This document shows, piece by piece, positions 37,101 to 64,000 of a stretch of 64,000 nucleotides of DNA; the stretch's first letter is position 1, and each line of letters starts with the position of its first letter. Source of the stretch: Macrostomum lignano (taxonomy: Eukaryota); contig NIVC01000449.1 of assembly GCA_002269645.1 (NCBI GenBank), positions 290,775 to 354,774 of the forward strand, read 5' to 3'. Both the position numbers and the translations under genes were made by a program. The notes under the pieces were generated by a model. It saw only the letters and a program-made list of their open reading frames with translations. It did not search any database and was not told the origin of the DNA.

Positions 37101-40100
37101 GCCCCTGTCTCTTGGTTGGGTGCCCCTGTCTCTTTGTTGGGTGCCCCTGTCTCTTGGTGGGCGCCCCTGTCTCTTGGTTGGGTGCCCCTGTCTCTTTGTT
37201 GGGTGCCCCTGTCTCTTGGTGGGCGCCCCTGTCTCTTGGTGGGTGCCCCTGTCTCTTGGTTGGGTGCCCCTGTCTCTTGGTGGGCGCCCCTGTCTCTTGG
37301 TTGGGTGCCCCTGTCTCTTGGTGGGCGCCCCTGTCTCTTGGTGGGTGCCCCTGTCTCTTGGTGGGTGCCCCTGTCTCTTGGTGGGTGCCCCTGTCTCTTG
37401 GTGGGCGCCCCTGTCTCTTGGTGGGTGCCCCTGTCTCTTGGTGGGTGCCCCTGTCTCTTGGTGGGTGCCCCTGTCTCTTGGTGGCCGCCCCTGTCTCTTG
37501 GTGGGCGCCCCTGTCTCTTGGTGGGTGCCCCTGTCTCTTGGTGGGTGCCCCTGTCTCTTGGTTGGGTGCCCCTGTCTCTTGGTGGGCGCCCCTGTCTCTT
37601 GGTGGGCGCCACTGTCTCTTGGTGGGCGCCCCTATCTCTTGGTTGGGTGCCCCTGTCTCTTGGTGGGTGCCCCTGTCTCTTGGTTGGGTGCCCCTGTCTC
37701 TTGGTGGGTGCCCCTGTCTCTTGGTGGGCGCCCCTGTCTCTTGGTGGGTGCCCCTGTCTCTTGGTTGGGTGCTCCGGTCTCTTTGTTGGGTGCCCCTGTC
37801 TCTTGGTGGGCGCCCCTGTCTCTTGGTGGGTGCCCCTGTCTCTTGGTGGGTGCCCCTGTCTCTTGGTGGGCGCCCCTGTCTCTTGGTTGGGTGCCCCTGT
37901 CTCTTGGTGGGCGCCCCTGTCTCTTGGTTGGGTGCCCCTGTCTCTTGGTTGGGTGCCCCTGTCTCTTGGTGGGTGCCCCTGTTTCTTGGTTGGGTGCCCC
38001 TGTCTCTTGGTGGGCGCCCCTGTCTCTTGGTTGGGTGCCCCTGTCTCTTGGTGGGCGCCCCTGTCTCTTGGTGGGCGCCCCTGTCTCTTGGTGGGTGCCC
38101 CTGTCTCTTGGTGGGTGCCCCTGTCTCTTGGTGGGCGCCCCTGTCTCTTGGTGGGTGCCCCTGTCTCTTGGTGGGCGCCCCTGTCTCTTGGTGGGTGCCC
38201 CTGTCTCTTGGTTGGGTGCCCCTGTCTCTTGGTGGGCGCCCCTGTCTCTTGGTGGGCGCCCCTGTCTCTTGGTGGGCGCCCTTGTCTCTTGGTTGGGTGC
38301 CCCTGTCTCTTGGTGGGCGCCCCTGTCTCTTGGTGGGCGCCCCAGTCTCTTGGTGGGCACCCCTGTCTGTCTGTCTCTTTGGAACTGGACTGGACTGGAC
38401 TGGACTGGACTGGACTGGACTGGACTGGACTGGACTAGCCTAGCCTAGGCTAGCATGAGGCCACACATATGCGGCTGAGAAGAAAGGAGAGAGGAGAGAG
38501 GAGAGGAAGATCGAGTAAGGCCACCTCTTGATAAGCGGGGACGGCAAGCAAGCAAAATTTAGCCGGCAGACTTCCGCGAGTAGCCGAGAAAGAAAGAGAA
38601 AAAGTCGATGTTGAAAAGTTTTCTATAGAGTTGTCGCTCAAGGATTGAGGGACTCCCTGTCCGCGTTTCACCCATTATATATTAATAATAATAGTTCTGT
38701 ATTAATTGTGATGAAGTCTCTCGCTTAGCCCCCCCCCCAATCTCTCTCCATTCCGGCAGAATAGTTCAGCAGATGAAAAATGAAAAAGAATTTTAGGTTG
38801 GCTACATCTTTATCTGCCCATAGGGTTGCATGTTCTGCTTCAAATTTTGTACTTTTATTTTAAAGTCAAGACTTAGACGTGTGCATTCCGTGCACAGAGA
38901 TTTGGTTGTTAATTTTGTTTAACTTGCTGATGACTTGGGCCATGCAGTTCTGCTAGCAAATTTAATCTTGCTTTAATCGTTCGTCTGTTTGCGAGAATTT
39001 TTTTAGGGAAATGTTTCATTTTTTAAACTGTTGATTTCGGGAACATTTTTTGAAAAAGGTTTTATTGTGGGCCGATATTCTAAGGTAGCAATACATGTAA
39101 ATTGTCTGGAACCATTATTTTCTTATAAATTATTAGGCTTTGATTTTAGAGACGAATCTCACGTGAGATTATCCAGCTTAGATTTGAATAAACACGAATC
39201 TCAGGGGTGAGATTATCTAGCTTAGCTTTGTGTAGACACAAATCTCAGGGGTGAGATTATCTAGCTTAGATTTGAATAGACACGAATCTCAGGGGTGAGA
39301 TTATCTAGCTTAGCTTTGTGTAGACACAAATCTCAGGGGTGAGATTATCTAGCTTAGCTTTGTGTAGACACAAATCTCAGGGGTGAGATTATCTAGCTCA
39401 GCTTTGTGTAGACACGAATCTTAGGGGTGAGATTATCTAGCTTAGATTTGAATAGACACAAATCTCAGGGGTGAGATTATCTAGCTTAGCTTTGTATAGA
39501 CACGAATCTCAGGGCTGAGATTATCTAGCTTAGCTTTGTGTAGACACAAATCTCAGGGGTGAGATTATCTAGCTTAGATTTGAATAAACACGAATCTCAG
39601 GGGTGAGATTATCTAGCTTAGATTTGAATAGACACGAATCTCAGGGGTGAGATTATCTAGCTTAGCTTTGTGTAGACACAAAAGTCAGGGGTGAGATTAT
39701 CTAGCTTAGCTTTGTGTAGACACAAATCTCAGGTGTGAGATTATCTAGCTCAGCTTTGTGTAGACACGAATCTCAGGGGTGAGATTATCTAGCTTAGCTT
39801 TGTGTAGACACAAATCTCAGGGGTGAGATTATCTAGCTTAGCTTTGTGTAGACACAAATCTCAGGGCTGAGATTATCTAGCTTAGCTTTGTATAGACACA
39901 AATCTCAGGGCTGAGATTATCTAGCTTAGGTTTGTATAGACACAAATCTCAGGGCTGAGATTATCTAGCTTAGCTTTGAATAGACACGAATCTCAGGGGT
40001 GAGATTATCTAGCTTAGCTTTGTGTAGCCACGAATCTCAGGGGTGAGATTATCTAGCTTAGCTTTGTGTAGACACGAATCTCAGGGGTGAGATTATCTAG

Positions 40101-43774: not shown

Positions 43775-44500
43775 GCTCCTGTCACTCATGTCACCCAAAT
43801 TGTCACTCCTGTCACTCCTGCCACTCCGGTCACTGCTGTCACTGCTGTCACTGCTGTCACTCCTGTCACTTCTGTCACTCCTGTCACTCCTGTCACTTCT
43901 GTCACTGCTGTCACTTCTGTCACTTCTGTCACTCCTGTCACTCCTGTCACTTCTGTCACTGCTGTCACTCCTGTCACTTCTGTCACTCCTGTCACTCCTG
44001 TCACCCAAATTGTCACTCCTGTCACCCAAATTGTAACTCCTGTCACTCCTGTCACTCCGGTCACTCCGGTCACTGCTGTCACTGCTGTCACTCCTGTCAC
44101 TTCTGTCACTCCTGTCACTGCTGTCACTCCTGTCACTGCTGTCACTGCTGTCACTGCTGTCACTGCTGTCACTCCTGTCACTCCTGTCACTGCTGTCACT
44201 CCTGTCACTTCTGTCACTGCTGTCACTCCTGTCACTTCTGTCACTCCTGTCAACCCTGTCACTTCTGTCACTGCTGTAACTCCTGTCACTGCTGTCACCC
44301 TAACTGTCTCTCCTGTCACCCCTGTCACCCTAATTGTTACTCCTGTGACTCCTGTCACCCTAATTGTTACTCCTATCACTCCTGTCACACCTGTCACTGC
44401 TGTCACTCCTGTCACTTCTGTCACTCCTGTCACACCTGTCACTCCTGTCACTCCCGTCACTTCTGTCACTTTTGTCACTCCTGTCTGTCCTGTCACTTCT
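43775..44500. repeat. 9-bp repeat (CTGTCACT(C/G/T))n
   Basis: Tandem units. Confidence 0.9.
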
Positions 44501-44567
44501 GTCAACCCTGGCAACCCTATTTTTGTATGGATAAAAAGGAAATCAATATCTGCTTTACCATCAACCA

Positions 44568-47500
44568 TCAGCAGCAGGCTGCATCTAATTATTTAATTAT
44601 CAGTATATTTTATGCATATTGCTGACTATAATATTGCTGGGACACAGATGGTCAATCCTGAATAAATGTGTTTATATAACGCCAGATTTTCATCACCGTT
44701 CATGCGCAGGTGCACAGGTGCTCACAGAGCTGAAATGAGAATTTTGACCATCAGTTACTCATAATTACAGGGGGTCAGGTTAGTCAGGGCGAGCTCACAA
44801 GCTAGTCAAGCTACTCATAATTACAGAGGGACAGGTCGGCCAGGGCGAACTCACAAGCTAGTCAAGCTACTCATAATTACAGAGGGACAGGTCGGCCAGG
44901 GCGAACTCACAAGCTAGTCTAGCTACTCATAATTACAGAGGGACAGGTCGGCCAGGGCGAACTCACAAGCTAGTCAAGCTACTCATAATTACAGAGGGAC
45001 AGGTCGGCCAGGGCGAACTCACAAGCTAGTCAAGCTACTCATAATTACAGAGGGACAGGTCGGCCAGGGCGAACTCACAAGCTAGTCACAAGCCTGTCAA
45101 CCTTACAGAGGGACAGGTCGGCCAGGGCGAACTCACAAGCTAGTCAAGCTACTCATAATTACAGAGGGACAGGTCGGCCAGGGCGAACTCACAAGCTAGT
45201 CAAGCTACTCATAATTACAGAGGGACAGGTCGGCCAGGGCGAACTCACAAGCTAGTCAAGCTACTCATAATTACAGAGGGACAGGTCGGCCAGGGCGAAC
45301 TCACAAGCTAGTCAAGCTACTCATAATTACAGAGGGACAGGTCGGCCAGGGCGAACTCACAAGCTAGTCAAGCTACTCATAATTACAGAGGGACAGGTCG
45401 GCCAGGGCGAACTCACAAGCTAGTCAAGCTACTCATAATTACAGAGGGACAGGTCGGCCAGGGCGAACTCACAAGCTAGTCAAGCTACTCATAATTACAG
45501 AGGGACAGGTCGGCCAGGGCGAACTCACAAGCTAGTCAAGCTACTCATAATTACAGAGGGACAGGTCGGCCAGGGCGAACTCACAAGCTAGTCAAGCTAC
45601 TCATAATTACAGAGGGACAGGTCGGCCAGGGCGAACTCACAAGCTAGTCAAGCTACTCATAATTACAGAGGGACAGGTCGGCCAGGGCGAACTCACAAGC
45701 TAGTCACAAGCCTGTCAACCTTACAGAGGGACAGGTCGGCCAGGGCGAGCTCACAAGCTAGTCAAGCTACTCATAATTTCGCTACTCACCGCTACACTCC
45801 TTGCCCCGGTTGTCCCCATCGCAGGTGCACTCATAGCGCACCCCGCCGTAGCGCACCCGGTAGCGCTGGCCGCGATCCACGTAGCGGCCCTCGATATCCT
45901 TGCACTTGCCGGCGTTGTCGAACTGCTCCTTGCTCAGGCAGTTCCTGTAGCCTTCCAGCCCGGCGCAGTCGCACACGAACATCACGCCGCCGTTCTCCAC
46001 CGTCACCTTCTCGCCGGCCTTCTTGTCGGATCCGCTGACGTCTCTGCAGAGCGGAGATCGGCAGCTACCGTAGGCATTGGTGCCGCCGCAGGTGCAGTGC
46101 AGGACGGCTCCGTCCCGCTCAGTGGTGGCCGGGGCGCCGACCTCCACGTAGCTGCCGGAGGCCGCGTCCAGGCACCTGCCCTCGTTGCGCACAGCCTCAT
46201 CGGTGCGGCAGTTCTGGAAGCCGTCAACTCCGGCGCAGGTGCAAATGTAGGTGACGCCGCCGCTCACTGTGGTGACCTGCTGGCCCTTCTTCTTGGCCTC
46301 TCCGGTTCGGCTGTCCCTGCAGGTCTCTGCGGGAGTCGGCGTTATTTGGAGCTCAGTGGCGTGCGATAGCGGGGGGCTGGGGGCTCCTTCAACAACTAAA
46401 TGAAAAAGGCGTGACATAAATGACAGGAGCTCCATTTAGCCCGTACAAGATGCAGGGACGTCCACGTACCTAAGAGAAAGGGACGCCCACCAAAAGACAG
46501 GGCGCCAACCTAAGAGACAAGGGCGCCAACCTAAGAGACAAGGGCGCCAACCTAAGAGACAGGGGTGCTCACCAAGAGACAAGGGCGCCCACCAAGAGAC
46601 AGGGGCGCCCACCAAGAGACAGGGGCGCCCACCAAGAGACAGGAGCGCCCACCAAGAGACAGGGGCGCCCATCAAGAGACAGGGGCGCCCACCAAGAGAC
46701 AGGAGCGCTCACCAAGAGACAGGGGCGCCCACCAAGAGACAGGAGCGCTCACCAAGAGACAGGGGCGCCCACTAAGAGACAGGGGCGCCAACCTAAGAGA
46801 CAGGGGCGCCAACCTAAAAGACAGGGGCGCCAACCTAATAGACAGGGGCGCCAACCTAGGAGACAGGGGCGCCAACAAAGAGACAGGGGCGCCCACAAAG
46901 AGACAGGGGTCACCCAAAGGACAGTTATCTCTTGTGACACTAAAACGGCACAGTATTCTTCTTCATTACCTATATATAGATCTTCTTTCAAGCACGCCAA
47001 CAATAGAAACCGGGTTTCCCCAGCGGGGGGGGCAGCAGCGCTAGTCTACAGCACTAAACCTGGGGCAGCCCTCGCACTCACCAGTTCTGCAGTTGGCGAA
47101 GGTGAACGAGCCGCCAGACTCCTGCTGGCAGACGCAGTGCATCGGGCCGCTGGCGCCGGTCACCGTGGCGGCCTCGCCAGCCTTGTAGCACCTGCCGCCG
47201 CTGCTCTCGCGGCAGCCGACTTCAATTGGAAGTAAATTGAGCAGGTGAGCGGACCGGGTAAAGAAGATTTTTCTAATTTTCACAGCACGACACATCTGGG
47301 TTATTTAATCAGGTTTCAGCACCAGGGGCGCCAGCACCAGAGGCGCCAGCACCAGAGGCGCCAGCACCAGGGGCGCCAGCACCAGAGGCGCCAGCACCAG
47401 AGGCGCCAGCACCAGAGGCGCCAGCTCCAGAGGCGCCAGCTCCAGAGGCGCCAGCACCAGGGGCGCCAGCACCAGGGGCGCCAGCACCAGGGGCGCCAGC

Positions 47501-48539: not shown

Positions 48540-49995
48540 AGACAGACACTGAGATAGACACTGAGACAGACACTGAGACAGACACTGAGACAGACACTGA
48601 GACAGACACTGAGACAGACACTGAGACAGACACTGAGACAGACACTGAGACAGACACTGAGACAGACACTGAGACAGACACTGAGACAGACACTGAGACA
48701 GACACTCAGACAGACACTGAGACAGACACTCAGACATACAATGAGACAGACACTCAGACAGACAATGAGACAGACAATGAGACAGACAATGAGACAGACA
48801 ATGAGACAGACACTGAGACAGACAATGAGACAGACAATGAGACAGACACTGAGACAGACACTGAGACAGACACTGAGACAGACAATGAGACAGACACTAA
48901 AATGGACACCAAGACAGACACTAAGACAAATACTAAAACAGACAATGAGACAGACACTCAGACAGACAATGAGACAGACACTCAGACTAACAATGAGACA
49001 GACACTAAAATGGACACCAATACAGACACTAAGACAAATACTAAGACAGACGCTAAGACAGACAATGAGACAGACACTGAGACAGACACTGAGACAGACA
49101 CTGAGACAGACACTGAGACAGACACTGAGACAGACACTGAGACAGACACTGAGACAGACACTCAGACAGACACTGAGACAGACACTGAGACAGACACTCA
49201 GACAGACAATGAGACAGACACTCAGACAGACAATGAGACAGACACACAGACAGACAATGAGACAGACGCTCAGACAGACAATGAGACAGACACTAAAATG
49301 GACACCAAGACAGACACTAAGACAAATACTAAGACAGACAATGAGACAGACACTCAGACAGACAATGAGACAGACACTAAAATGGACACCAAGACAGACA
49401 CTAAGACAAATACTAAGACAGACGCTGAGACAGACAATGAGACAGACACTCAGACAGACAATGAGACAGACACTCAGACAGACAATGAGACAGACAATGA
49501 GACAGACAATGAGACAGACACTCAGACAGACAATGAGACAGACACTGAGACAGACACTCAGACAGACACTGAGACAGACAATGAGACAGACACTGAGACA
49601 GACAATGAGACAGACACTGAGACAGACAATGAGACAGACAATGAGACAGACAATGAGACAGACAATGAGACAGACACTCAGACAGACACTGAGACAGACA
49701 CTCAGACAGACACTGAGACAGACAATGAGACAGACACTGAGACAGACAATGAGACAAACAATGAGACAGATATTGAGACAGACACTGAGACAGACACTGA
49801 GACAGACACTGAGACAGACACTCAGACAGACACTGAGACAGACACTGAGACAGACACTCAGACAGACAATGAGACAGACACTGAGACAGACACTGAGACA
49901 GACACTGAGACAGACACTGAGACAGACACTCAGACAGACAATGAGACAGACACTGAGACAGACACTAAAACGGACACCAAGACAGATGCTGAGAA
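48540..49995. repeat. 12-bp satellite (GAGACAGACA(CT/AT))
   Basis: Tandem units with a recurring variant block (AAAATGGACACCAAG...) four times. Confidence 0.95.
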
Positions 49996-50127
49996 ATTCA
50001 TTTAATAAAATTTTCGAGAATTTTTAAAGCGCCTATTTCTATCGAATTTCTGTGAGAAATTCTGAGACTTCACTAAATATAGCATTGCTAAAACACAGTC
50101 TCAGCTTCGTGTTGCGTCTTCCGTTTC

Positions 50128-50234: not shown

Positions 50235-53200
50235 TGTTGTGCGCAGCCTATGCGTGTACAATGCCCTTTCTCTTGCTCTCTAGCCAACGTGCTCAGTACC
50301 CCAATGTATTGCGTAACTCATAGCTGCACGTCGGCAGCTGCGTGAATATATATCGCAAATATACGGCTCTTAGAGGCCAAGATTCTTACCCGCCAAGCGG
50401 ACTACGAGCACTACAATGGCGTCGCAGCTAAACTTACCAAGCCCAGCGCGCTTGGACCTGCGAACAGACCCCAACACGGCCCAGACTAAATGGAAAAAGT
50501 GGTACGCACAATTTGAACTTTTCGCTGTGGCTGCAAACATCGAAGACAAAAAGCGGCTTCGCCAGCTTCTGCTGTATACAGCCGGAGAGGACTTGCAGTC
50601 GATTGCGGCCGGTCTCGGCGACAAAGAGGCAGCAGGCAAAGACGTCGAAACACTTGTAGCCGCGCTTAACGACCACTTCGACAGCAAGCGGAATCTCCCG
50701 TTCACCCGCTATCAGTTCAGGTTGTGCACGCAGCGGTCCGGCGAGCCCATCGACGAATGGCTCCAGTGCCTCAAAGATGCTGCCGACTGCTGCGGCTTCG
50801 AGGGCCTCAGAGACTCCCTGATCCGTGACCAGGTGATCGCCGGCTGCAGTTCAGAGCAGCTTCGCCGCAAGCTGCTAGCGATCGACAATGTCGACCTGGA
50901 GCAGGCGCTTCGGGTGGCCAGAGCCATGGAGACAGCAGAGACTCAGGCAAGCCTCATGGAATCTAACGAGGCGGCGGTACAGCGACTTCGGCTTCGAGAC
51001 ACTGGTGCAGCGGCCTCATCAGCAGAGCGCCCAGTCAAGGGACCAGCCAAGCAGCAGCCAGGCAAGCAGACCACGTGCATCAGATGCGGAGTCCCGGGCC
51101 ACCGCACATGCAACGCAGCCAGAGGCAAGACGTGCGAGCGCTGCGGAAGGCGAAATCACTTGGCGAGGGCCTGCCTCTCCCGGCCGTTGGAAGCCGTCCG
51201 CGCCCTGCAGGCCGACAGCGACAGCTCAGAGCCTGAGGACAGCATCTTCTGTCTGACCGTGGCGGCCACCGGGACGGCTACAGCGGGCGCCCGCACAACA
51301 GTGCTCGTCGACTCAACGCAGCTGGAAGTCCTGGTCGACAGCGGGGCCGACTGCAATATCTTGACAGAGAAAGCCTGGCGGAAACTGCCGCGACCCCCGC
51401 CGCTGCAGACAACTCGCACAAAGGTATTCGCCTTCCGCTCTTCAGAACCGCTCAGCATCCTGGGAGCCTGCAGCCTGCAGGTGACAACCGGCCAAGATAG
51501 CCAGGAGGTTCGCTTCATCGTCGTCCCCGGCGACGGCGTCAACATCCTGGGACGGGAGGCATCAACCTCACTCCGCCTTCTGAGCTTGGGGCCTCAGGTT
51601 CGCGCGATCGCAGCAGCCGAGACGAAGAACGCAGAGACCCTGGCGCTGGCCAAGCGATTTCCGGAGCTCTTCAAAGGCCTCGGAAAGGTCAAGGGTGTTT
51701 CGGTTCAGATTGGTATCAAGCCTGACGCCAGGCCCGTCTGCCATCCGCCCTCTCGGGTACCAGTGCATCTCAGAGAGGCGCTGGACCGCGAGCTGGACGA
51801 GCAAGAGCGCCTGCAGATCATCCAGCCAGTAGAAGGCCCCACGCCATGGGTCAGTCGCATCGTCGTGGTACCGAAAGAAGACGGGAAGACCGTGAGGATC
51901 ACCCAGGATTTGCGAGACGTTAACAAGGCGGCCCTGAGGCAACGACACCAAATCCCGACTTTTGAAGAAGCTACCAGCGACATGACGGGGTCGACAATCT
52001 TCACCAAGCTCGACATCTTCAAGGCGTTTCATAAAATTGAGATCAGTGAGGACAGCCGCAAGTACTTCGTCTTCTCAACGCCCCGAGGGATGCGTCAGCT
52101 GACACGCCTGAGCATGGGATTCGCCTCCGCCTCGGAGATCCTGCAGCGCGTCATGCAGCAAGTGCTGGAAGGCCTCACTGGTGTCAAGTGGATCCACGAC
52201 GACATCATCATCCACAGTCAGGGCCCTGAAGTTCACCAGGAACATGTGGCAGCCTGCCTGACCAGACTGCGTGACAATGGCATCACCCTGAATGCCAGCA
52301 AGTGCCGCTGGGGCATCGGCAAGGCCAAGTTCATGGCCATGACGCTCTCCAAGTTCGGCATTCAGCCATCAGAAGAGAAAATCGCAGAGCTGCAAGCATT
52401 CAAGGATCCACAGTCTGCCAAGGAAGTCCGGTCGTTTCTCGGCCTGGCCAATCACCTCGAGAAGTTCATGCCGCACCTTTCCAACAAAGCGGAGCCGCTG
52501 AGGCGACTAACACGGAAAGGCCAGGAATTCGTCTGGGACCGCGAGCAGCAGCAGTCCTTCCAGGCCGTCAAGGACTGCATCTCCGAGGGCTGCACGCTGG
52601 CCTTCTTCGACAAGCGGCTGCCGACCGAGCTGGTGGTCGCTGCGTCACCCGTCGGCGTTGGTGCCATTCTGCAGCAGCGGCACCCAAGCGGGCAGACGCG
52701 GCCGGTGGCCTACGCGAGCCGCACGCTCAGTGACGTCGAACGGCGCTACAGCCAGATCGAGCGCGAGGCCCTGGGCGTCAAGTTCGGCTGCTTGAAGTTC
52801 GCGTTTTACCTGGAGGGCTGCCCGCACTTTGATATCTACACCGACCACAAGCCGCTGCTCGGGATCTACAGAGCAGACTCAAGGCCGCCGCCCCGGCTCG
52901 AGCGTATCATGCTGCAGACCCAGCACTTCACGTTCACACTGCACTACCGCAAAGGCGAGGACAACCCGGCAGACCCACTGAGCCGCAATCCGCTGACAAG
53001 CGCATCGTCACACAAAGACGAGGCTGAGGACACCAGACTGTGCAACGCCGTTGTCCAAGCGGCCACCCCAAAGGGCCTGACCGTCGACAGGATCCAGGCT
53101 GCGACCGAGAGAGACCCAGCTCTGGTGGTCGTCATGCGCGCCTTGGAAACAGGAAACTGGAGCTGCGGCGCGGCGAGCCCGGCGCACAGTTTTCGGTCCC

Positions 53201-54751
53201 TCAAAGACGAACTGAGCGTTCACGCAGGCCTTCTGCTCCGGGGAAACAGAATCGTGATCCCGGCGGAGCTTCAGCAGCTTACGATCGGTTTAGCGCACCA
53301 GGGCCACCTCGGACAGAAGAAGACGTGCGACCGACTGCAGCGTAAGGTCTGGTGGCCCGGCATGTCCAAGCAGGTCGAGGCGGTCGTCACTAACTGCCTC
53401 CCGTGTCAAGCGGCCCGGACCGACGGCGCCGTGAAACACCCGCCGATGCAGCCGACGCCGCTTCCGTCGGGGGCCTGGCAATCGCTCAGCGTCGACGTGT
53501 GCGGACCATTCCCAACGGGCGAGAACGTAGTTGTCTTGGTGGACTACTTCAGCCGCTACCCGGACCTCTACGTGGTGCGCAGCCTCACCAGCGCCAGCGT
53601 CATCAACTGCGTCATTGCCTCATTCAGCCGCTTCGGTGTGCCGCAGCAGATCACTACGGACAACGCCACCTACTTCACGAGCGAAGAATTCAACGTGTTT
53701 CTGGACGGCCTCGGGGTTCGACAGCGCAGGGTCACCCCACTCTACCCGGCGGCGAACGGCGAGGTGGAGCGCTTCAACCGCAGCCTCAACAAGGCCATCA
53801 ACGCCGCCACGGCCGAAGGCAACGACTGGCGGCGGGCGATCCACGAGTGGCTGCTCGGATACCGCAACTCTGTGCACCAAGGCACCGACCGCACGCCCAA
53901 CGACCTCATGTTCAACCGAGAGACCGGCGACATCCTGCCATCTGGCCTGACAAAGCAAACCGGCAGCTCCGGACGGCAGCTGCAGCTCCACGACCGCGGC
54001 TACAAGCAGGCGATGCGCAAGGCGGCCGACACGCGGCGTTCGGCTGCGCCACACGGCATCCTGGCAGGCGCCCGCGTGCTGCTCAGAAACCGCGGCAAGG
54101 CCAAGCTGCGCTGTCCGTTCGACCCGCGGCCTTGGCTTGTCAAGGCAGTCAGCGGCGGCGCCCTGACTCTGCAACGCGGCACGGCAGTCATTCGGCGGCA
54201 TGTGACCGAGACGAAGCCGCTTCGTGAGTGCCCCTGGGACCTTGACGAGATGGACGGCGATCAGCGGCCGGGGGCGCCTGTGACAGAGGCAAATTCGGCC
54301 AACGACGGTCCGATTGCGCAGAGGCCTCATCCCAGGACAGCAAAGCAGCCCGTCTGCTACAAGCAGTGACTTGATTCGAACTGAGCCGGAACGCTGTCAA
54401 AGATCGGCATGCTTTAATTGTTTAAGTATTTAATCGTTCGAAATCAAAAAAATTTGAGACTGTTTTACTAATTAATTTTTTTTAATCCTTCACGTCGTTT
54501 CTTGACCAATTTTCGCAATGAAATTTTAAACCCTCTCGTATTGGACTTTTCTTTTGCTTTGGGGGAGAGATGTGGTGCGCAGCCTATGCGTGTACAATGC
54601 CCTTTCTCTTGCTCTCTAGCCAACGTGCTCAGTACCCCAATGTATTGCGTAACTCATAGCTGCACGTCGGCAGCTGCGTGAATATATATCGCAAATATAC
54701 GGCTCTTAGAGGCCAAGATTCTTACCCGCCAAGCGGACTACGAGCACCACA
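50235..54751 (+). mobile_element. Full-length Mag-like Ty3/Gypsy LTR retrotransposon (4,517 bp)
   Basis: 181-bp LTRs (50235-50415, 54571-54751) with TG...CA ends, 5-bp TSD AGCAT (50230-50234, 54752-54756), PBS-like TGGCGTCGCAG at 50417, PPT GGGGGAGAGA (54561-54570) and a single gag-pol ORF. Confidence 0.95.
50416..54369 (+). CDS. Gag-Pol polyprotein, 1317 aa
   Basis: Two Cys-His knuckles, LVDSGA protease, RT IHDD, RNase H (LVVAAS, EREAL, YTDH), and integrase HQGH...CLPC, VDVCGP, TDNA, NGEVER. Confidence 0.93.
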   Translation: MASQLNLPSPARLDLRTDPNTAQTKWKKWYAQFELFAVAANIEDKKRLRQLLLYTAGEDLQSIAAGLGDKEAAGKDVETLVAALNDHFDSKRNLPFTRYQFRLCTQRSGEPIDEWLQCLKDAADCCGFEGLRDSLIRDQVIAGCSSEQLRRKLLAIDNVDLEQALRVARAMETAETQASLMESNEAAVQRLRLRDTGAAASSAERPVKGPAKQQPGKQTTCIRCGVPGHRTCNAARGKTCERCGRRNHLARACLSRPLEAVRALQADSDSSEPEDSIFCLTVAATGTATAGARTTVLVDSTQLEVLVDSGADCNILTEKAWRKLPRPPPLQTTRTKVFAFRSSEPLSILGACSLQVTTGQDSQEVRFIVVPGDGVNILGREASTSLRLLSLGPQVRAIAAAETKNAETLALAKRFPELFKGLGKVKGVSVQIGIKPDARPVCHPPSRVPVHLREALDRELDEQERLQIIQPVEGPTPWVSRIVVVPKEDGKTVRITQDLRDVNKAALRQRHQIPTFEEATSDMTGSTIFTKLDIFKAFHKIEISEDSRKYFVFSTPRGMRQLTRLSMGFASASEILQRVMQQVLEGLTGVKWIHDDIIIHSQGPEVHQEHVAACLTRLRDNGITLNASKCRWGIGKAKFMAMTLSKFGIQPSEEKIAELQAFKDPQSAKEVRSFLGLANHLEKFMPHLSNKAEPLRRLTRKGQEFVWDREQQQSFQAVKDCISEGCTLAFFDKRLPTELVVAASPVGVGAILQQRHPSGQTRPVAYASRTLSDVERRYSQIEREALGVKFGCLKFAFYLEGCPHFDIYTDHKPLLGIYRADSRPPPRLERIMLQTQHFTFTLHYRKGEDNPADPLSRNPLTSASSHKDEAEDTRLCNAVVQAATPKGLTVDRIQAATERDPALVVVMRALETGNWSCGAASPAHSFRSLKDELSVHAGLLLRGNRIVIPAELQQLTIGLAHQGHLGQKKTCDRLQRKVWWPGMSKQVEAVVTNCLPCQAARTDGAVKHPPMQPTPLPSGAWQSLSVDVCGPFPTGENVVVLVDYFSRYPDLYVVRSLTSASVINCVIASFSRFGVPQQITTDNATYFTSEEFNVFLDGLGVRQRRVTPLYPAANGEVERFNRSLNKAINAATAEGNDWRRAIHEWLLGYRNSVHQGTDRTPNDLMFNRETGDILPSGLTKQTGSSGRQLQLHDRGYKQAMRKAADTRRSAAPHGILAGARVLLRNRGKAKLRCPFDPRPWLVKAVSGGALTLQRGTAVIRRHVTETKPLRECPWDLDEMDGDQRPGAPVTEANSANDGPIAQRPHPRTAKQPVCYKQ

Positions 54752-54987
54752 AGCATCAAGTGCAATCAGAGAGCGCCACCGACCTCGTCGCAGGGGCGGC
54801 GGTCAGAACCTCGAGTCCAGGGTGTCCTCATCGAAGATTTTCAGCCTCAGGTGCCGGGAGGGCGAGGCAACCCAGCCAGTGTTTTTTGAGGTCTTCAGGG
54901 CCCTCCATACAGCGGTGACAGGTGGGGTCAGCGGCTGGGTTAGCGATGGTGCTGTAGGCGCGGAGAAGGCCAGAAGTTTCCAGAAAG

Positions 54988-55597
54988 AGGAGCACCTCGC
55001 CAGGAGCACCTCGCCAAGAGCACCTCGCCAGGAGCACCTCGCCAAGAGCACCTCGCCAGGAGCACCTCGCCAAGAGCACCTCGCCAGGAGCACCTCGCCA
55101 AGAGCACCTCGCCAGGAGCACCTCGCCAAGAGCATCTCGCCAGGAGCACCTCGCCAAGAGCACCTCGCCAGGAGCACCTCGCCAAGAGCACCTCGCCAGT
55201 AGCACCTCGCCAAGAGCACCTCGCCAGGAGCACCTCGCCAAGAGCACCTCGCCAAGAGCACCTCGCCAGGAGCACCTCGCCAAGAGCACCTCACCAAGAG
55301 CACCTCGCCAGGAGCACCTCGCCAAGAGCACCTCGCCAGGACCAACTCGCCAGGAGCACCTCGCCAGGAGCACCTCGCCAAGAGCACCTCGCCAAGAGCA
55401 TCTCGCCAGGAGCACCTCGCCAGGAGCACCTCGCCAGGAGCACCTCGCCAAGAGCACCTCGCCAAGAGCACTTCGCCAAGAGCATCTCGCCAGGAGCACC
55501 TCGCCAAGAGCACCTCGCCAGGAGCACCTCGCCAAGAACACCTCGCCAGGAGCAACTCGCCAGGAGCACCTCGCCAAGAGCACCTCGCCAAGAGCAC
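54988..55597. repeat. 14-bp minisatellite (GAGCACCTCGCCA(A/G)) inside the LINE relic
   Basis: ~43 tandem units. Confidence 0.93.
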
Positions 55598-55994
55598 TGC
55601 GTCCTGGCGGATCTGGCAGCTCTTCCCGGTTCAAAGCGCGGTAGACAGCAGCGGTGCGGGCGTGGGTCGCGGCGGATGTGCCTCGATCGATCGTTGCGTA
55701 GATGTTGTCAACGACCAGGGACTTCTTGGTGCCCAGAAAGACACGCACGCGACAGATCTCAATCGGCTCTGCTGTGTCAACTGGGATGCGCTTGTATTCA
55801 AGGTGGTCTCGGATAAAGCTCAGCGGACCACCCGCCCCATCAGATTGCTTGCGGTCCACGCGTAAAGTGGCGAAAACGGAAATATACATGATGGCGTCGT
55901 TCGTGCATCGTGCATTCGTGTGTTCGTGCATTCCTGTACATTATGCATCTGCAGACCTTCAGATTAATAAGTATTCGCTGTTGCGCTGTGGGCT

Positions 55995-57445
55995 CCCTGG
56001 CACCCCTGTCTCTTGGTGGGTGCCCCTGTCTTTTGGTGGGCGCCCCTGTCTCTTGGTGGGCACCCCTGTCTGTCTGTCTCTTGGTGGGAGTCCCTGTCTC
56101 TTGGTGGGCGCCCCTGTCTCTTGGTGGGCGCCCCTGTCTCTTGGTGGGCGCCCCTGTCTCTTGGTGGGCGCCCCTGTCTCTTGGTTGGCGCCCCTGTCTC
56201 TTGGTGGGCGCCCCTATCTCTTGGTTGGCGCCCCTGTCTCTTGGTTGGCGCCCCTGTCTCTTGGTGGGCACCCCTGTCTCTTGGTGGGCGCCCCTGTCTC
56301 TTGGTGGGCGCCCCTGTCTCTTGGTGGGCACCCCTGTCTCTTGGTTGGTGCCCCTGTCTCTTGGTGGGCGCCCCTGTTTCTTGGTGGGTGCCCCTGTCTC
56401 TTGGTGGGAGTCCCTGTCTCTTGGTGGGCACCCCTGTCTGTCTGTCTCTTGGTGGACGCCCCTGTCTCTTGGTGGGCGCCCCTGTCTCTTGCTGGGCGCC
56501 CCTGTCTCTTGGTGGGCGTCCCTGTCTCTTGGTGGGCGCCCCTGTCTCTTGGTGGGCGCCCCTGTCTCTTGGTGGGCGCCCCTGTCTCTTGGTGAGCGCC
56601 CCTGTTTCTTGGTGGGCGCCCCTGTCTCTTGGTGGGCGCCCCTGTCTCTTGGTGGGCGCCCCTGTCTCTTGGTGGGCGCCCCTGTCTCTTGGTGGGCGCC
56701 CCTGTCTCTTGGTGGGCGCCACTGTCTCTTGGTGGGCGCCCCTGTCTCTTGGTGGGCGCCCCTGTCTCTTGGTTGGCGCCCCTGTCTCTTGGTGGGCACC
56801 CCTGTCTCTTGGTGGGCACCCCTGTCTCTTGGTGGGCGCCCCTGTCTCTTGGTGGGCGCCCCTGTTTCTTGGTTGGCGCCCCTGTCTTTTGGTGGGCGCC
56901 CCTGTCTCTTGGTGGGCGCCCCTGTCTCTTGGTGGGCGCCCCTGTCTCTTGGTGGGTGCCCCTGTCTCTTGGTGGGCGCCCCTGTCTCTTGGTGGGCGCC
57001 CCTGTCTGTTGTCTCTTGGTGGGCGCCCCTGTCTCTTGGTGGGTGCCCCTGTCTCTTGGTGGGCGCCCCAGTCTCTTGGTGGGCGCCCCTGTCTCTTGGT
57101 GGGCACCCCTGTCTCTTGGTGGGCACCCCTGTCTCTTGGTGGGCGCCCCTGTCTCTTGGTGGGCGCCCCTGTTTCTTGGTTGGCGCCCCTGTCTCTTGGT
57201 GGGCGCCCCTGTCTCTTGGTGGGCGCCACTGTCTCTTGGTGGGCGCCCCTGTCTCTTGGTGGGTGCCCCTGTCTCTTGGTGGGCGCCCCAGTCTCTTGGT
57301 GGGCGCCCCTGTCTGTTGTCTCTTGGTGGGCGCCCCTGTCTCTTGGTGGGTGCCCCTGTCTCTTGGTGGGCGCCCCAGTCTCTTGGTGGGCGCCCCTGTC
57401 TGTTGTCTCTTGGTGGGAGTCCCTGTCTCTTGGTGGGCACGAGAG
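55995..57445. repeat. 20-bp satellite array C (GGGCGCCCCTGTCTCTTGGT)
   Basis: Same family as array A. Confidence 0.95.
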
Positions 57446-57939
57446 AGACAGGTAAAAGCATAGGAGAGTCGGGAGAGAGCCAGAGCCCTGTTGCTAAGCA
57501 ACCGATTCTCTACAACTACTGTACAGTTGAGAAGGCCAGTAGGCAGAGTGAGAGAGAAAACTGGCCCAGTTTAACAATGCATTTTATGCACATTTGACCG
57601 CCTCCTCACACCGAAGCACTGCGAGACTGAGCAGCATTTTACTCTGCTCAGTAATTAAATGCATTTAAAGATCTCAGACTGCACTGGGGCACAATGGGTC
57701 AGCTCAGCCTCATCAAGTACAGCTTGGGGTGGCCGCTGCAGCCGCAGCCTCTCCGTTGCCATGCTGGGTGCACAGAGGCGAAGGCGGCGGACTCAGCGCT
57801 CATGCTCGGGAGAGAAGTTTCGGCTGCTCAGGCCGAGGGGTGGTCGGCCTCGCCAGAGGCTGCAAAAGGGCGGGCAGCTGAGAGATGAGGCGGTAAAATC
57901 TTTCGGGCAACCGGCTGCACAAACCTTTGAAACACCTCC

Positions 57940-58510
57940 ACTCTGACAGCAGCCGTGACTGACATCTGCCTCTCTGACAGCAGCCGTGACTGACATCTGC
58001 CTCTCTGACAGCAGCCGTGACTGACATCTGCCACTCTGACAGCAGCCGTGACTGACATCTGCCTCTCTGACAGCAGCCGTGACTGACATCTGCCACTCTG
58101 ACAGCAGCCGTGACTGACATCTGCCACTCTGACAGCAGCCGTGACTGACATCTGCCACTCTGACAGCAGCCGTGACTGACATCTGCCACTCTGACAGCAG
58201 CCGTGACTGACATCTGCCACTCTGACAGCAGCCGTGACTGACATCTGCCACTCTGACAGCAGCCTGACTGACATCTGCCACTCTGACAGCAGCCGTGACT
58301 GACATCTGCCACTCTGACAGCAGCCGTAACTGACATCTGCCACTCTGACAGCAGCCGTGACTGACATCTGCCACTCTGACAGCAGCCGTGACTGACATCT
58401 GCACTCTGACAGCAGCCGTGACTGACATCTGCCACTCTGACAGCAGCCGTGACTGACATCTGCCACTCTGACAGCAGCCGTGACTGACATCTGCCACTCT
58501 GACAGCAGCC
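57940..58510. repeat. 31-bp minisatellite (CTCTGACAGCAGCCGTGACTGACATCTGCCA)
   Basis: ~18 tandem units. Confidence 0.93.
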
Positions 58511-59090
58511 AGACATTACGGACAAGGTTCATAAAGTCTCTTCATAATTCATTAAAAACATTTACAGCCGCAAAGCTGCAAACCTCACCTCTACCTCTGT
58601 CCCTTCCTCTTTCTTTTTCCCACCCTTCTTTTTCCCTCCCTCCCTCCTTCTCCCTCCCTCCCTCTTTCTTTCGTCCTCCTCTCTTTCTCTCTTCTCTCTT
58701 TCTTGCACATGTCGTGCCGTAGCCATAAGGAGGACTCTTCGTTATAAGAGAGCGCTTAGTTGAGCACAAGAAAAAAACGCAACTTCAAGTGACAGTTAAG
58801 CGGCCTTTATTATATTGAGAAACAACCGACAAAACGCCTATAATATAGCGCAGTCAAACATTTCTAACTTTAGCCTAGGCACAACGTGGCGCGTGAACGC
58901 TACGTACATTGGCGATGAGTAAATATTACGTACACAAAGTAAGTCAGTAAAAATCAGTCAATGAGCTAAGCCAGGCGGCGCCACAGCTCCCTCACTTTCT
59001 TCTCCCTCCACTTCATTTTCCCTACATCCCCAACTTTCTCCTATTTTCCACCACTTTTAACCTTACTAATCCAACACGTTCTAGAGAACA

Positions 59091-62000
59091 ATGAGCCAAA
59101 ATCAAAGTCAGCATCAGTTCGTCACGACCGAAAACATCCCGCAAACTGCTCGACGTGCCCATGGTACGACATCGTCCAGCTTAAGTGATATCGTTCAGGC
59201 CACTCACAGTGCTTTAGACAACGGTGACTTTGAAATCATCAAGTTTCTCGTCCCACAAATCAATGACCAATCAAACAGGGACACCTGCTGCATCAATGCT
59301 GCCGAAAAAGCTGCAGACAATGTCACTTTGAAATCGTCAAGTTTCTCGTCTCACAAATCAATGACCAATCAAACAGGGACACCTGCTGCATCAAAGCTGC
59401 CGAAAAAGCTGCAGACAATGGTCACTTTGAAATCGTCAAGTTTCTGTCCCACAAATCAATGACCAATCAAACAGGGACACCTGCTGCATCAAAGCTGCCG
59501 AAAAAGCTGCAGACAATGGTCACTTTGAAATCGTCAAGTTTCTCGTCCCACAAATCAATGACCAATCAAACAGGGACACCTGCTGCATCAAAGCTGCCGA
59601 AAAAGCTGCAGACAATGGTCACTTTGAAATCGTCAAGTTTCTCGTCCACAAATCAATGACCAATCAAACAGGGACACCTGCTGCATCAAGCTGCCGAAAA
59701 AGCTGCAGACAATGGTCACTTTGAAATCGTCAGTTTCTTCGTCCCACAAATCAATGACCAATCAAAAGGGACACCTGCTGCATCAAAGCTGCCGAAAAAG
59801 CTGCAGTCAAGGGTCACTTTGAAATCGTCAAGTTTGTCGTCTCACAAATCAATGACCAATCAAACAGGGACACCTGCTGCATCAAAGCTGCCGAAAAAGC
59901 TGCAGACAATGGTCACTTTGAAATCGTCAAGTTTCTCGTCTCACAAATCAATGACCAATCAAACAGGGACACCTGCTGCATCAATGCTGCCGAAAAAGCT
60001 GCAGACAATGGTCACTTTGAAATCGTCAAGTTTCTGTCTCACAAATCAATGACCAATCAAACAGGGACACCTGCTGCATCAAGCTGCCGAAAAAGGCTGC
60101 AGTCAATGGTCACTTTGAAATCGTCAAGTTTCTCGTCCCACAAATCAATGACCAATCAAACAGGGACACCTGCTGCATCAAAGCTGCCGAAAAGCTGCAG
60201 ACAATGGTCACTTTGAAATCGTCAAGTTTGTCGTCTCACAAATCAATGACCAATCAAACAGGGACACCTGCTGCATCAAGCTGCCGAAAAAGCTGCAGAC
60301 AATGGTCACTTTGAAATCGTCAAGTTTCTCGTCCCACAAATCAATGACCAATCAAAAAGGGACACCTGCTGCATCAAAGCTGCCGAAAAGCTGCAGCAAT
60401 GTCACTTTGAAATCGTCAAGTTTCTCGTCCACAAATCAATGACCAATCAAAAAGGGACACCTGCTGCATCAAAGCTGCCGAAAAAGCTGCAGACAATGGT
60501 CACTTTGAAATCGTCAAGTTTCTGTCCCACAAATCAATGACCAATCAAAAAGGGACACCTGCTGCATCAAAGCTGCCGATAAAGCTGCAATTTTTGATCA
60601 CTTTGAAATCGTCAAGTTTCTCGTCCCACAAATCAATGACCAATCAAAAAGGGACAACTGCTGCATCAAAGCTGCCAAAATAGCTGCAGAATGGTCACTT
60701 TGAAATCGTCAAGTTTCTCGTCTCACAAATCAATGACCAATCAAAAAGGGACACTGCTGCATCAAAGCTGCCAAAATAGCTGCAATGGTCACTTTGAAAT
60801 CGTCAAGTTTCTCGTCTCACAAATCAATGACCAATCAAAAAGGGACACCTGCTGCATCAAAGCTGCCGAAAAAGCTGCAATGGTCACTTTGAAATCGTCA
60901 AGTTTCTCGTCTCACAAATCAATGACCAATCAAAAAGGGACACTGCTGCATCAAAGCTGCCAAAAAGCTGCAGTCAAGGGTCACTTTGAAATCGTCAAGT
61001 TTCTCGTCTCACAAATCAATGACCAATCAAACAGGGACACCTGCTGCATCAAAGCTGCCGAAAAAGCTGCAGTCAAGGGTCACTTTGAAATCGTCAAGTT
61101 TCTCGTCCCACAAATCAATGACCAATCAAACAGGGACACCTGCTGCATCAAAGCTGCCGAAAATGCTGCAGTCAAGGGTCACTTTGAAATCGTCAAGTTT
61201 CTCGTCCACAAATCAATGACCAATCAAACAGGGACACCTGCTGCATCAATGCTGCCGAAAAAGCTGCAAACAATGGTCACTTTGAAATCGTCAAGTTTCT
61301 CGTCCCACAAATCAATGACCAATCAAAAAGGGACACCTGCTGCATCAATGCTGCCGAAGCTGCACAATGGTCACTTTGAAACGTCAAGTTTTCTCTCACA
61401 AATCAATGACCAATCAAAAAGGGACACCTGCTGCATCAAAGCTGCCGAATGCTGCATTATGGTCACTTTGAAATCGTCAAGTTTCTCGTCACAAATCAAT
61501 GACCAATCAAAAGGGACACCTGCTGCATCAAAGCTGCCGAAATAGCTGCAAATTTGGTCAATTTGAAATCGTCAAGTTTGTCGTCTCACAAATCAATGAC
61601 CAATCAAACAGGGACACCTGCTGCATCAAAGCTGCCGAAAAAGCTGCAGACAATGGTCACTTTGAAATCGTCAAGTTTCTCGTCCCACAAATCAATGACC
61701 AATCAAAAAGGGACACCTGCTGCATCAATGCTGCCGAAAAAGCTGCAGTCAAGCTTCACTTTGAAATCGTCAAGTTTCTCGTCACAAATCAATGACCAAT
61801 CAAAAGGGACACCTGCTGCATCAAAGCTGCCGAAAAAGCTGCACAATGGTCACTTTGAAATCGTCAAGTTTCTCGTCTCACAAATCAATGACCAATCAAA
61901 CAGGGACACCTGCTGCATCAAAGCTGCCGATAAAGCTGCAATTTTTGATCACTTTGAAATCGTCAAGTTTCTCATCTCCTGTGTCTCTAGTCTGGATCAG

Positions 62001-63146
62001 AGAGCGAATCTCCGTTTCCAATGCGCAATCGCGGCTTGCTCTCGTCTTCACGAAAATGTCGTTGCCTCCCTCGGTCTCGAGCCCGACTGGCTCTTTCAAT
62101 ACAACACCATCCTCAGCTTCACTGCAGCAATGGCCATCGAAGACAGAAACTCCGTTCTCAACAAAACCCTCTCTCAGATGCAGACAGCTCAAATCACACA
62201 GCTGCTCCGTCTCTCCATCTCTCAAAGACACGTCGCTCTTGCCGCCACACTGCTCAATCATCAGCGATTCAGCACACAGCATGTCGATCTCCCAGACGAC
62301 AACACCGGAGCCACCGCTCTCATGCTGGCAGCTGATGCAGGTCATCACGAACTCATTCACAAACTCATCGATCTCGGCGCCTCACTGCACGCTCAAGACA
62401 CTCACGGTCGCACCGCTCTCTCACGAGCCTGCCAAGCCGGTTACGTGCAAGCAGCCAAGATTCTCATCGACAATGGAGCCGATGCCAGCCATCGAGACAG
62501 TCAGGGCCTCACCTGTGCGCAGCTCGCAGAGCGATTTGAGCAGCGGCAGGTGCTGCGGCTGCTGAATCCCACCGAGTCAGTTGCCATTAGTTGCCATTCT
62601 ACTTGCAATCACTTCGCTACCTTACCTCGCTTTCCTTCACACATTCCAGAAACCCTCAGCACCCACAGCCAGCCGCTCAACGCCTTCATCAGTGAGTCTG
62701 ACCGCTTTCACTGCCCTCTCTTGGGTCGAGCTTGGGCCACGCTTCACTCCACTGACTCCTTTCTCATCATCCCCCCCCCAGACTCTCAGACCACTCCGAG
62801 CAAGACCACCGTCTCAGCGAGGAGCTGCATCGACTGCTCAGCGATGCGGGATTCACCCATCAGAGAGCAAAGTGTCAGCAGAGACTGGCTGACTGGCTGG
62901 AAGGAGTCGCTCAAGTCCTCACACAGGATCGCAGGCAGATGACGGGCAGCTACGCAGAGGGCTGGGCCAACAGTCTGGTGCAAGTGAACGGCAGGACAGC
63001 TGCAGACTCGGACATTGACTGGACTGTGCTGGTTGAAGGGCAAGAGTTCCATCTGGAAGGTGGCTGCAAAGGAAGATCTGGATCCTGCCAAAACGCCACT
63101 CGGCTGCAGGTCACGGAGGGCCACGCACAGGTGGCAGTGGGAGCAG
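59091..63146 (+). CDS. Ankyrin-array / cGAS-Mab21-like nucleotidyltransferase gene (5' partial; array frameshifted as assembled)
   Basis: Exon 1 (59091-62575): ATG, ~28 x 99-bp repeats (AAxxGHFEIVKFLV...), a unique linker, and ~3 canonical ankyrins (TGATALMLAADAGH, GRTALSRACQAGY, GLTCAQLA). Phase-2 intron 62576-62781. Exon 2 (62782-63146) is open and encodes MTGSYAEGWANSL...ADSDIDW, ending G|GTGAGT. Confidence 0.75.
59223..61977 (+). repeat. Coding tandem array of ~28 x 99-bp (33-aa) ankyrin-like units
   Basis: Unit GHFEIVKFLV(P/S)QINDQS(N/K)RDTCCI(K/N)AAEKAA(DN/VK/...), with many 1-2-bp deletions. Confidence 0.9.
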
Positions 63147-63476
63147 GTGAGTGACGCTGGGTTCATCATCAAAATGCTGAGATCCGCATGCAGCAGGATT
63201 CGCTGGATTTGCCCATTAATTTGCTCGAATTTTAATTCAGCCTCCAGCAGCTCCAAGCAGCTTCTCTGCCATGAGGTTTATATCGTCTGGTTTTTATTCA
63301 CATATTTTCACCCTTTCTCGCACTGTTTGTAATTTTTTTATTTTTAAGAAGTAAGGCAGGGGAATCTCAACAGAAACTTAGCATACATTGTCATTAATTT
63401 TTGCCGGCTTAAGCGTCCCTTTTCCGGGCGTCAATGTGGCAATTCGTGCCTTGAATTGTCTATGGTATTTTCTATC

Positions 63477-63998
63477 TCAGTAATAGAGCGAAATAGAACA
63501 ACAGTGTGAAACAGAGGCAAACAAATAACAGCAGAAGTTAATGTTAATGTTAATCTCTGGGCGACTGAGACAGAAGAAGCGATGCAGTCCGGCTCTAATG
63601 CAGATGAGACTTGCTGGAGCATAGTACCGCTCGTCCTTTGTTCGCAGTGTCGAATAGAAGAAACGCAAATAATTAGCCAGAATCGACTTTGGAATTCGCG
63701 GCAGATCCGTTGACAGTTTCATTTCTTCCAGAAAAGTCTTGAAGCGGCTCACATTGTCCTCCATCTGCCGGGCGAAGGAGTCCGGTATTCCATCTCGTTC
63801 AAGCTGATTCAACTCTTGCATCACGTCCTCCGGAATGTCGAGAATCTCTTCTGATTCTATCTTGCGCGCAAATTCTTCGCTCAGTTCCTCCAAATACCGG
63901 CTGTTCGACTCGGATGATACCCACGCCAGCTCTTCGGCCGACATACCGGAAACCATTTCTCCCGGCAGATTAGAATAATTAATTAAATGGTAGATCAT
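63477..63998 (-). mobile_element. Crypton-like tyrosine-recombinase element, N-terminal (core-binding) fragment, truncated
   Basis: FKTFL...IPKSILANYLRFFYSTLRTKDERYYAPASLICIRAGLHRF matches the Crypton/DUF3504-associated N-terminal pattern. The frame drifts into non-coding-like sequence before any catalytic R-H-R-Y residues. Confidence 0.7.
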
Positions 63999-64000
63999 TT

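Follow-up and report, generated by a model that had tools for sequence, protein, structure and literature searches.

Animal cGLRs were defined by Li et al. (2023; PMC9980059), and the parts of that work and its tables considered here contain the closest described relatives of the gene reported below. Ankyrin-fused cGLRs were described there from the coral Stylophora pistillata (corals also have death-domain-fused forms), and the tables list ankyrin-bearing proteins of the flatworm Macrostomum lignano, five of whose nucleotidyltransferase (NTase) domains were cloned for a screen of 140 enzymes (Table S3 nos 89-93, e.g., PAA68676.1 and PAA93208.1). Flatworms are described as mostly lacking cGLRs; in the part of Table S5 considered, the flatworm rows (cestodes) give 0 cGLR and 0 STING, and counts for Macrostomum were not found. 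Here, we analyzed a stretch of 64,000 nucleotides of M. lignano DNA (assembly GCA_002269645.1, contig NIVC01000449.1, positions 290,775 to 354,774; hereafter, the window), whose positions 59091-63146 represent the 5' part, about two-thirds, of one gene that GenBank annotates piecemeal. We consider it likely that this locus is one copy of the M. lignano ankyrin-cGLR family, in which an array of variant ankyrin repeats was amplified to 28 units, and that the frameshifts present in the array are largely assembly errors.

The ankyrin-cGLR kind is known and the M. lignano family was already catalogued in 2023, so that the gene is a further member of it; an earlier note, made from the letters of the window, had rightly cautioned that the fusion was not necessarily new. 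The annotated product of the gene, PAA67646.1, was not found in the part of the tables of Li et al. examined. It shares species, family and the ankyrin plus NTase architecture with the M. lignano proteins listed there, and over 415 aligned positions it is 82% identical to PAA68676.1 (no. 93), with identical GS...SDID and RPAQD motifs. In contrast with those proteins, which have at most nine diverged repeats, this copy has 28 near-identical ones, an array frame that is broken as assembled, and a private insertion of 15 aa.

The large first exon of the gene provides the start codon, the 33-aa variant ankyrin repeats and canonical ankyrin repeats, and is followed by a 42-nt micro-exon. The third exon encodes the spine helix and the putative catalytic strands bearing Gly-Ser and Asp-x-Asp, and from the last exon, outside the window, come the putative third catalytic Asp, the helical lobe of Mab-21 type and a C-terminal extension typical of the family. 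Judging from family membership, the product would be a cytosolic sensor-enzyme that, once triggered by the binding of a ligand or partner, would join two nucleotides into a cyclic di-nucleotide signal, with the ankyrin region presumably serving as the protein- or ligand-binding module.

Gene structure and annotation

The annotation of the locus consists of three partial gene models, and the pieces of the gene in GenBank are BOX15_Mlig033350g2 and BOX15_Mlig009614g1, the latter corresponding to PAA67646.1 ("hypothetical protein", partial). Window positions 53136-64000 align, with 99.0% identity, to the start of contig NIVC01001464.1 of assembly Mlig_3_7 (hereafter, the public contig). This is a second representation of the same locus, which shares 10.9 kb with the window and reaches past its end, located at position 10847 of the public contig. 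Mlig_3_7 was assembled from PacBio reads with Canu and then polished with short reads, and its gene models derive from an RNA-seq-guided transcriptome assembly (PMC5730564). Because the models were guided by RNA-seq, the micro-exon and the transcription of the 5' and 3' ends of the array have indirect RNA support.

All the features of the gene are on the forward strand. The open reading frame (ORF) begins with the ATG at 59091, where BOX15_Mlig033350g2 also starts with the same first residues, and the unique N-terminal coding sequence that opens exon 1 (MSQNQSQHQF..., 59091-59215) is homologous to the N-terminus of the paralogue PAA62074.1. It is followed by the tandem array, identified with TRF and Pfam, of 28 near-identical units of about 99 bp that each encode a 33-aa variant ankyrin-like repeat (59216-61978), and by the unique end of exon 1, which contains degenerate and canonical ankyrin repeats in an open frame and terminates at a donor GT at 62576 (61979-62575). 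This last region has no stops, matches Pfam Ank_2 with an E value of 3.4e-22 (tested as 61950-62575), and is 97.5% identical to residues 4-246 of PAA67646.1 (tblastn).

The earlier note had joined this exon directly to the one that starts at 62782. The donor (GA/GTCAGT, 62575/62576) and the acceptor (CAG/A, 62781/62782) that it proposed do exist and join in frame, but the annotated model inserts between them a micro-exon of 42 nt, NPQHPQPAAQRLHQ, which encodes (E)NPQHPQPAAQRLH(Q) (62650-62691). The micro-exon is flanked by good splice sites (ttccag before it and gtgagt after it), it is present in PAA67646.1 and was located in the public contig by tblastn, and the locus of the paralogue PAA62074.1 has one at the equivalent position. 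The reading frame is maintained by both routes. According to the sequence and the exon map of PAA67646.1, the micro-exon separates intron 1 (74 nt, gtcagt...ttccag, 62576-62649) from intron 2 (90 nt, gtgagt...cccccag, 62692-62781).

The following exon (62782-63146) encodes the N-terminal spine helix, strand 1 with Gly-Ser and strand 2 with Asp-x-Asp of the NTase core, and ends at the donor GCAG/GTGAGT (63146/63147). Between 62783 and 63145, it is 100% identical to residues 260-380 of PAA67646.1 (all 121 residues). Only the first 854 nt of intron 3 (63147-64000, donor GTGAGT at 63147) are included in the window, its total length in the public contig being about 2.25 kb. The last exon was found in the public contig, where residues 381-838 of PAA67646.1 map to approximately 12250-13775, about 1.4 kb past the end of the window. 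The earlier note expected the third catalytic Asp and the Mab-21 C-terminal lobe to lie beyond the window or to be disrupted; they do lie beyond it, but they are not disrupted, since the third Asp, the helical lobe of Mab-21 and the family-specific C-terminal extension are all encoded by this exon in a single open frame of 503 or more codons. A downstream exon that completes the fold is thus available, and the resulting four-exon plan is common to this gene and to that of PAA62074.1.

Three further observations were made in this region. The PAA67646.1 model splices out about 50 codons (VESGLEPQDI...PFLPEFTQ, around 13400 of the public contig); since the genomic sequence of this segment is open and the paralogue has conserved it, it is probably real, and the deposited protein is probably missing it. 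The private 15-aa insertion in the last exon, WIPLGIHGATKAEAW (around 12700), has the look of a short tandem duplication centered near KAEAW. Neither PAA62074.1 nor PAA68676.1 has it, and in the structural model described below it coincides with the one internal loop of low confidence (residues 257-266). Finally, intron 3 contains, on the opposite strand, an ORF of 173 aa (63477-63998 in the window, 10324-10845 in the public contig, where it is unannotated). In Pfam it matches only the QRICH1 domain, and weakly (E 0.088), and it may be a fragment of a gene derived from a mobile element.

The predicted nucleotidyltransferase domain and its family

The motif GSYAEG (62945-62962), followed after 15 residues by SDID (63008-63019), is present in the translated exon exactly as the earlier note had reported. 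When the translation of 62783-63145 was compared with 1.84 billion representative proteins, 79 matches were obtained, the best of them being PAA67646.1. A chance occurrence of the motif is ruled out, given that the exon has 78 real homologues; P0027, which had been considered as a homologue, was dropped as a spurious repetitive protein. All of the family clusters that were looked up (20 of 20) belong to M. lignano. As far as these sequences indicate, the gene family, in which ankyrin repeats are joined to a cGLR enzyme, is specific to M. lignano, and since flatworms are described as mostly lacking cGLRs, it represents a lineage-specific expansion.

For the profile comparisons, we used an alignment of the domain of about 450 residues from 28 family members. 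Pfam Mab-21_C (PF20266) matched all 28 of them (best E 5.2e-10), although the PAA67646.1 product alone scored 19-21.5 bits, under the cut-off of 24.1. The profile of the Mab-21 N-terminal NTase, PF03281, which the earlier note had suggested as a check, matched neither the window exon nor any of the 28 members. Weak matches to the MTPAP-like palm were obtained for six members and to NTP_transf_2 for one, and some members are named 'Mab-21 domain-containing' in UniProt. Against the sequences of the PDB, the family profile retrieved cGLR1 (8gjy, E 2.6e-8) as its best match, then cGAS entries (approximately 1e-7 to 1e-6) and MAB21L1 (0.012). The match to cGLR1 is restricted to the C-lobe, and the C-lobe of cGAS is likewise matched (E about 1e-7).

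An AlphaFold2 model of the PAA67646.1 domain, built with the same alignment, reached a mean pLDDT of 83 and a pTM of 0.86. In a Foldseek search of the PDB, the top 40 matches were all cGAS, followed by MAB21L1, and cGAS reached an E value of 2e-8 over about 390 aligned columns. The TM scores relative to the query were 0.37-0.46 (0.43-0.46 for the best matches, to cGAS), and those relative to the target rose to 0.61 (0.55-0.61 for the best matches). The predicted elements succeed one another as a long helix (residues 36-57), a strand that ends in Gly-Ser (60-64), a loop, a strand that starts with Asp-Ile-Asp (87-93), and a further strand (147-156), and in the model this order is that of a Pol-beta-type core. 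The candidate for the third Asp is Asp398 of the RPAQD motif, which corresponds to Asp149 of the model and falls in the predicted strand 147-156. Given that the N-lobe was never aligned by a sequence profile, the assignment of the catalytic residues follows from the motif order and the predicted secondary structure, and they should be regarded as putative. Altogether, the Mab-21_C matches in all members, the profile matches to cGLR1 and cGAS, and the cGAS-like model bear out the fusion of ankyrin repeats with a cGAS/Mab-21-like NTase that the earlier note had proposed.

Vertebrate cGAS (PDB 4K9B, 6CTA) is thus the best structural match of the model, with the same order of Gly-Ser, Asp-x-Asp and third Asp. 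The two differ in that their identity is only 12-16%, ankyrin repeats take the place of the cGAS N-terminal region, the loop from GS to DxD is longer, and the family has an additional helical extension spanning about 130 aa, along with about 100 aa of conserved C-terminal sequence. MAB21L1 (5EOG) has the same fold (Foldseek E 2e-6). Neither the helical extension, which lies beyond the cGAS-like domain at residues 384-459 of the model, nor the conserved C-terminal segment (TLFTARLSQP...LYVNFRCLSWSLQAELL...) has a Pfam match.

Comparison of the non-array exons with those of the paralogue PAA62074.1 gave dN/dS values of 0.49, 1.38 (the small exon with the GS motif, which has few sites) and 0.60, with dS between 0.06 and 0.25. 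Considering these values and that no stop is found in about 830 non-array codons, these exons are, at the sequence level, unlike an old pseudogene.

The ankyrin array

TRF described the array as 28.4 copies with a period of 98-99 bp, 93% matches and 3% indels. Its consensus unit is the 33-aa sequence DNGHFEIVKFLVSQINDQSNRDTCCIKAAEKAA, and five units match Pfam Ank_2 with an E value of 3e-28; the ankyrin repeats of the paralogue PAA62074.1 match the same profile at 1.5e-38. A search of five consensus repeats against 5.8 billion proteins recovered only a 97-aa GenBank fragment of this locus and generic ankyrin proteins with 30-48% identity. Given as 28 near-identical copies here versus at most nine, diverged, in the annotated relatives, the variant repeats form a block that is a recent minisatellite-like amplification in this copy.

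The earlier note had called the size and homogeneity of the array unusual and had read it as a solenoid of about 920 aa. The array itself was confirmed, but not the single open frame. The unit lengths range from 92 to 99 bp and are divisible by three in only 10 of the 28 units of the window, so that the frame shifts among all three frames; 18 units are off-frame in the window and 15 in the public contig. Against the consensus, 30 deletion events but 0 insertions were counted in the array of the window. Most of the single-base deletions fall in homopolymer runs (counting the CCC and AAAAA variants of the unit); the sites affected are shared by the two assemblies, but the units in which they are deleted differ.

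The disagreement between the window and the public contig is concentrated in the array. From 58900 to 64000, 107 alignment columns differ, all of them inside the array except for two homopolymer indels in introns. Over the shared 10.9 kb, the rate is 31.8 differences per kb in the 99-bp array versus 1.7 in non-array sequence and 1.4-10 in other minisatellites. Both assemblies contain 28 units, but the lengths disagree in 17 of them: units of exactly 99 bp number nine in the window and 12 in the public contig, 15 in at least one assembly and six in both. The array has a net shortfall of 48 nt in the window, which is divisible by three, versus 55 nt in the public contig. Short-read polishing of a PacBio assembly works poorly within near-identical repeats. 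The paralogue, by comparison, has in the same assembly an open array (8.4 copies of 99 bp, 83% matches) with 0 indels. Because the assemblies disagree in the array, the indels are all deletions that lie mostly at homopolymers, and the array of the paralogue lacks indels, we infer that much of the frameshifting is consensus error of the long-read assemblies, and the assembled array would be no reliable guide to its true coding state.

Alternative explanations

A set of observations argues against the locus being an amplified cGLR copy with an array damaged largely in assembly. Five units have an identical off-frame length in both assemblies, suggesting that some frameshifts may be real, and the two assemblies that we compared may share PacBio reads and would then not be fully independent. 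ML2 and Mlig_3_7 were built from the same PacBio reads (PMC5730564), and the sequencing technology of the 2023 M. lignano assembly was not found in the paper on that assembly. At least three in-frame array units at high identity were found in none of the assemblies or database proteins. The dN/dS values are only moderately below 1 in two exons (0.49 and 0.60) and reach 1.4 in the exon with the GS motif. As for the enzyme, the spacing from Ser to Asp in GS...DxD is 20 residues, so that this loop is longer than that of cGAS, in which the spacing is about 11-12. A Pfam search with the GS/DxD exon of the window alone returned only noise, and the N-lobe was not aligned to classical cGLRs by sequence profile (hhalign, six proteins from Table S3: 19% probability, C-lobe only). 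Moreover, in the parts considered, Li et al. describe no activity of the M. lignano proteins and do not include any Macrostomum enzyme among those that they name as active (PMC9980059).

The alternative that best withstands the evidence is that this copy is decaying. The frameshifts in the array would then be real, the array would be a non-coding minisatellite, and the locus would produce an N-terminally truncated protein (at most two array repeats, joined to the canonical ankyrin repeats and to the NTase) or no functional product at all. The off-frame units of both assemblies, including the five that share their length, are consistent with such a state, but no insertions are seen among the indels, which fall mostly in homopolymer runs and differ between the assemblies at about 32 per kb next to identical flanks. 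The split of the locus into three partial gene models, the private insertion in the last exon and the dN/dS range of 0.5-1.4 also point to decay, whereas the exons outside the array are all open, over a total of about 830 codons. Minisatellites abound in this genome, tandem repeats constituting 15% of it (PMC5730564), with at least eight arrays in the window alone; nevertheless, the diverged array of the paralogue is free of indels in the same assembly. We therefore regard decay as possible but rather doubtful.

A second alternative is that the product is a non-enzymatic scaffold, with the cGAS fold used for protein binding only and no nucleotide signal, as has been proposed for MAB21L1 and some crustacean Mab21 proteins. 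Besides the unusually long loop from Gly-Ser to Asp-x-Asp, it is favored by the screen of 140 enzymes, for which the parts of the paper considered describe no activity of the five M. lignano constructs (PMC9980059). However, according to the same paper, many cGLRs seem inactive in vitro because the right ligand is missing. Also in favor of a scaffold, the other flatworms listed by Li et al., in the rows considered, have neither a cGLR nor STING (PMC9980059), and a study of shrimp Mab21, in the part considered, argues for signaling outside the canonical pathway (PMC12928593). The near-neutral predicted pI of the NTase region (7.2, family range 5.7-9.3) could also suit a scaffold; with respect to direct nucleic-acid sensing, it neither favors nor disfavors it. 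In contrast, the putative active site is conserved across the 28 paralogues in a manner unexpected for a family of dead enzymes: Gly-Ser is present in 28, Asp336 in 27, Asp338 in 26 and Asp398 in 24 (PAA67646.1 numbering). This differs from MAB21L1/2/3, which lack a predicted functional active site in the account of Li et al. considered here (PMC9980059). For these reasons, a pure scaffold seems unlikely.

The version given in the earlier note, an intact receptor-enzyme in which a homogeneous solenoid of about 920 aa gates second-messenger synthesis and is spliced directly from 62575 to 62782, is right in its architecture, its direct junction is in frame, and its array could be intact in vivo if the indels are assembly errors, but it appears improbable as a whole, considering that the array is open in no sequence source and that the annotated transcript uses the micro-exon. 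The reading that we prefer, then, is that of a family copy with an amplified array whose frameshifts arose largely in assembly.

Other features of the window

The window is eukaryotic and repeat-rich; the short GT-AG introns of the locus, and the Ty3/Gypsy elements and flatworm genes of the window, rule out a bacterial or viral origin of the locus. Coding regions of two Ty3/Gypsy-type long terminal repeat (LTR) retrotransposons are present on the forward strand. In one (25247-31409), overlapping ORFs together encode gag with a zinc knuckle, reverse transcriptase (RT), RNase H and integrase, and the other (50416-54369) has one intact ORF of 1317 aa for protease, RT, RNase H and integrase. An exon for a PurA-type single-stranded DNA/RNA-binding protein was identified at 12931-13374 (forward strand; Pfam PurA, E 8e-49), with an overlapping antisense ORF. 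On the reverse strand, the C-terminal part (residues 125-213, approximately, of 220) of the product of the ORF at 19112-19774 matches the transmembrane region of neurotransmitter-gated ion channels of the Cys-loop type (Pfam Neur_chan_memb, E 1e-8).

A GC-rich minisatellite with a 20-bp unit, GGCGCCCCTGTCTCTTGGTG or its complement, occurs at 35729-38448, 46565-47044 and 55999-57405. The unit was identified by TRF at the last of these sites and by similar repetitive ORF translations at the other two, and it creates long spurious ORFs on both strands. Further arrays are located at 13697-15868, 17197-17858, 34846-35354, 43786-44568, 48741-50027, 55000-55597 (14 bp) and 57938-58510 (31 bp).

Implications

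A cGAS-like enzyme was correctly recognized in the earlier note from a single exon of raw sequence, and the value of the present follow-up is mostly corrective. It also provides a caution for genome scans, in that long, near-perfect coding repeats in long-read assemblies can mimic pseudogenes or giant proteins where the assembled letters themselves are not to be relied upon.

The locus raises the question of whether a coding minisatellite, here of 28 ankyrin repeats that are almost identical, can form part of an enzyme of the pattern-recognition type. We consider it a slim possibility that the array is open in the living animal, in which case a catalytically competent cGLR would bear an ankyrin solenoid of more than 900 residues, built of near-identical repeats, recently amplified and probably polymorphic in length. 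An array of this kind would be quick to change in length and could make a binding surface more diverse. Another question concerns the downstream target of these enzymes in a flatworm, since the rows of Li et al. considered give 0 STING for the other flatworms. If the array were indeed open, the gene would represent a fast-evolving, minisatellite-like sensor module that may act through a pathway independent of STING, and this in a phylum from which cGLRs and STING have otherwise been reported absent.

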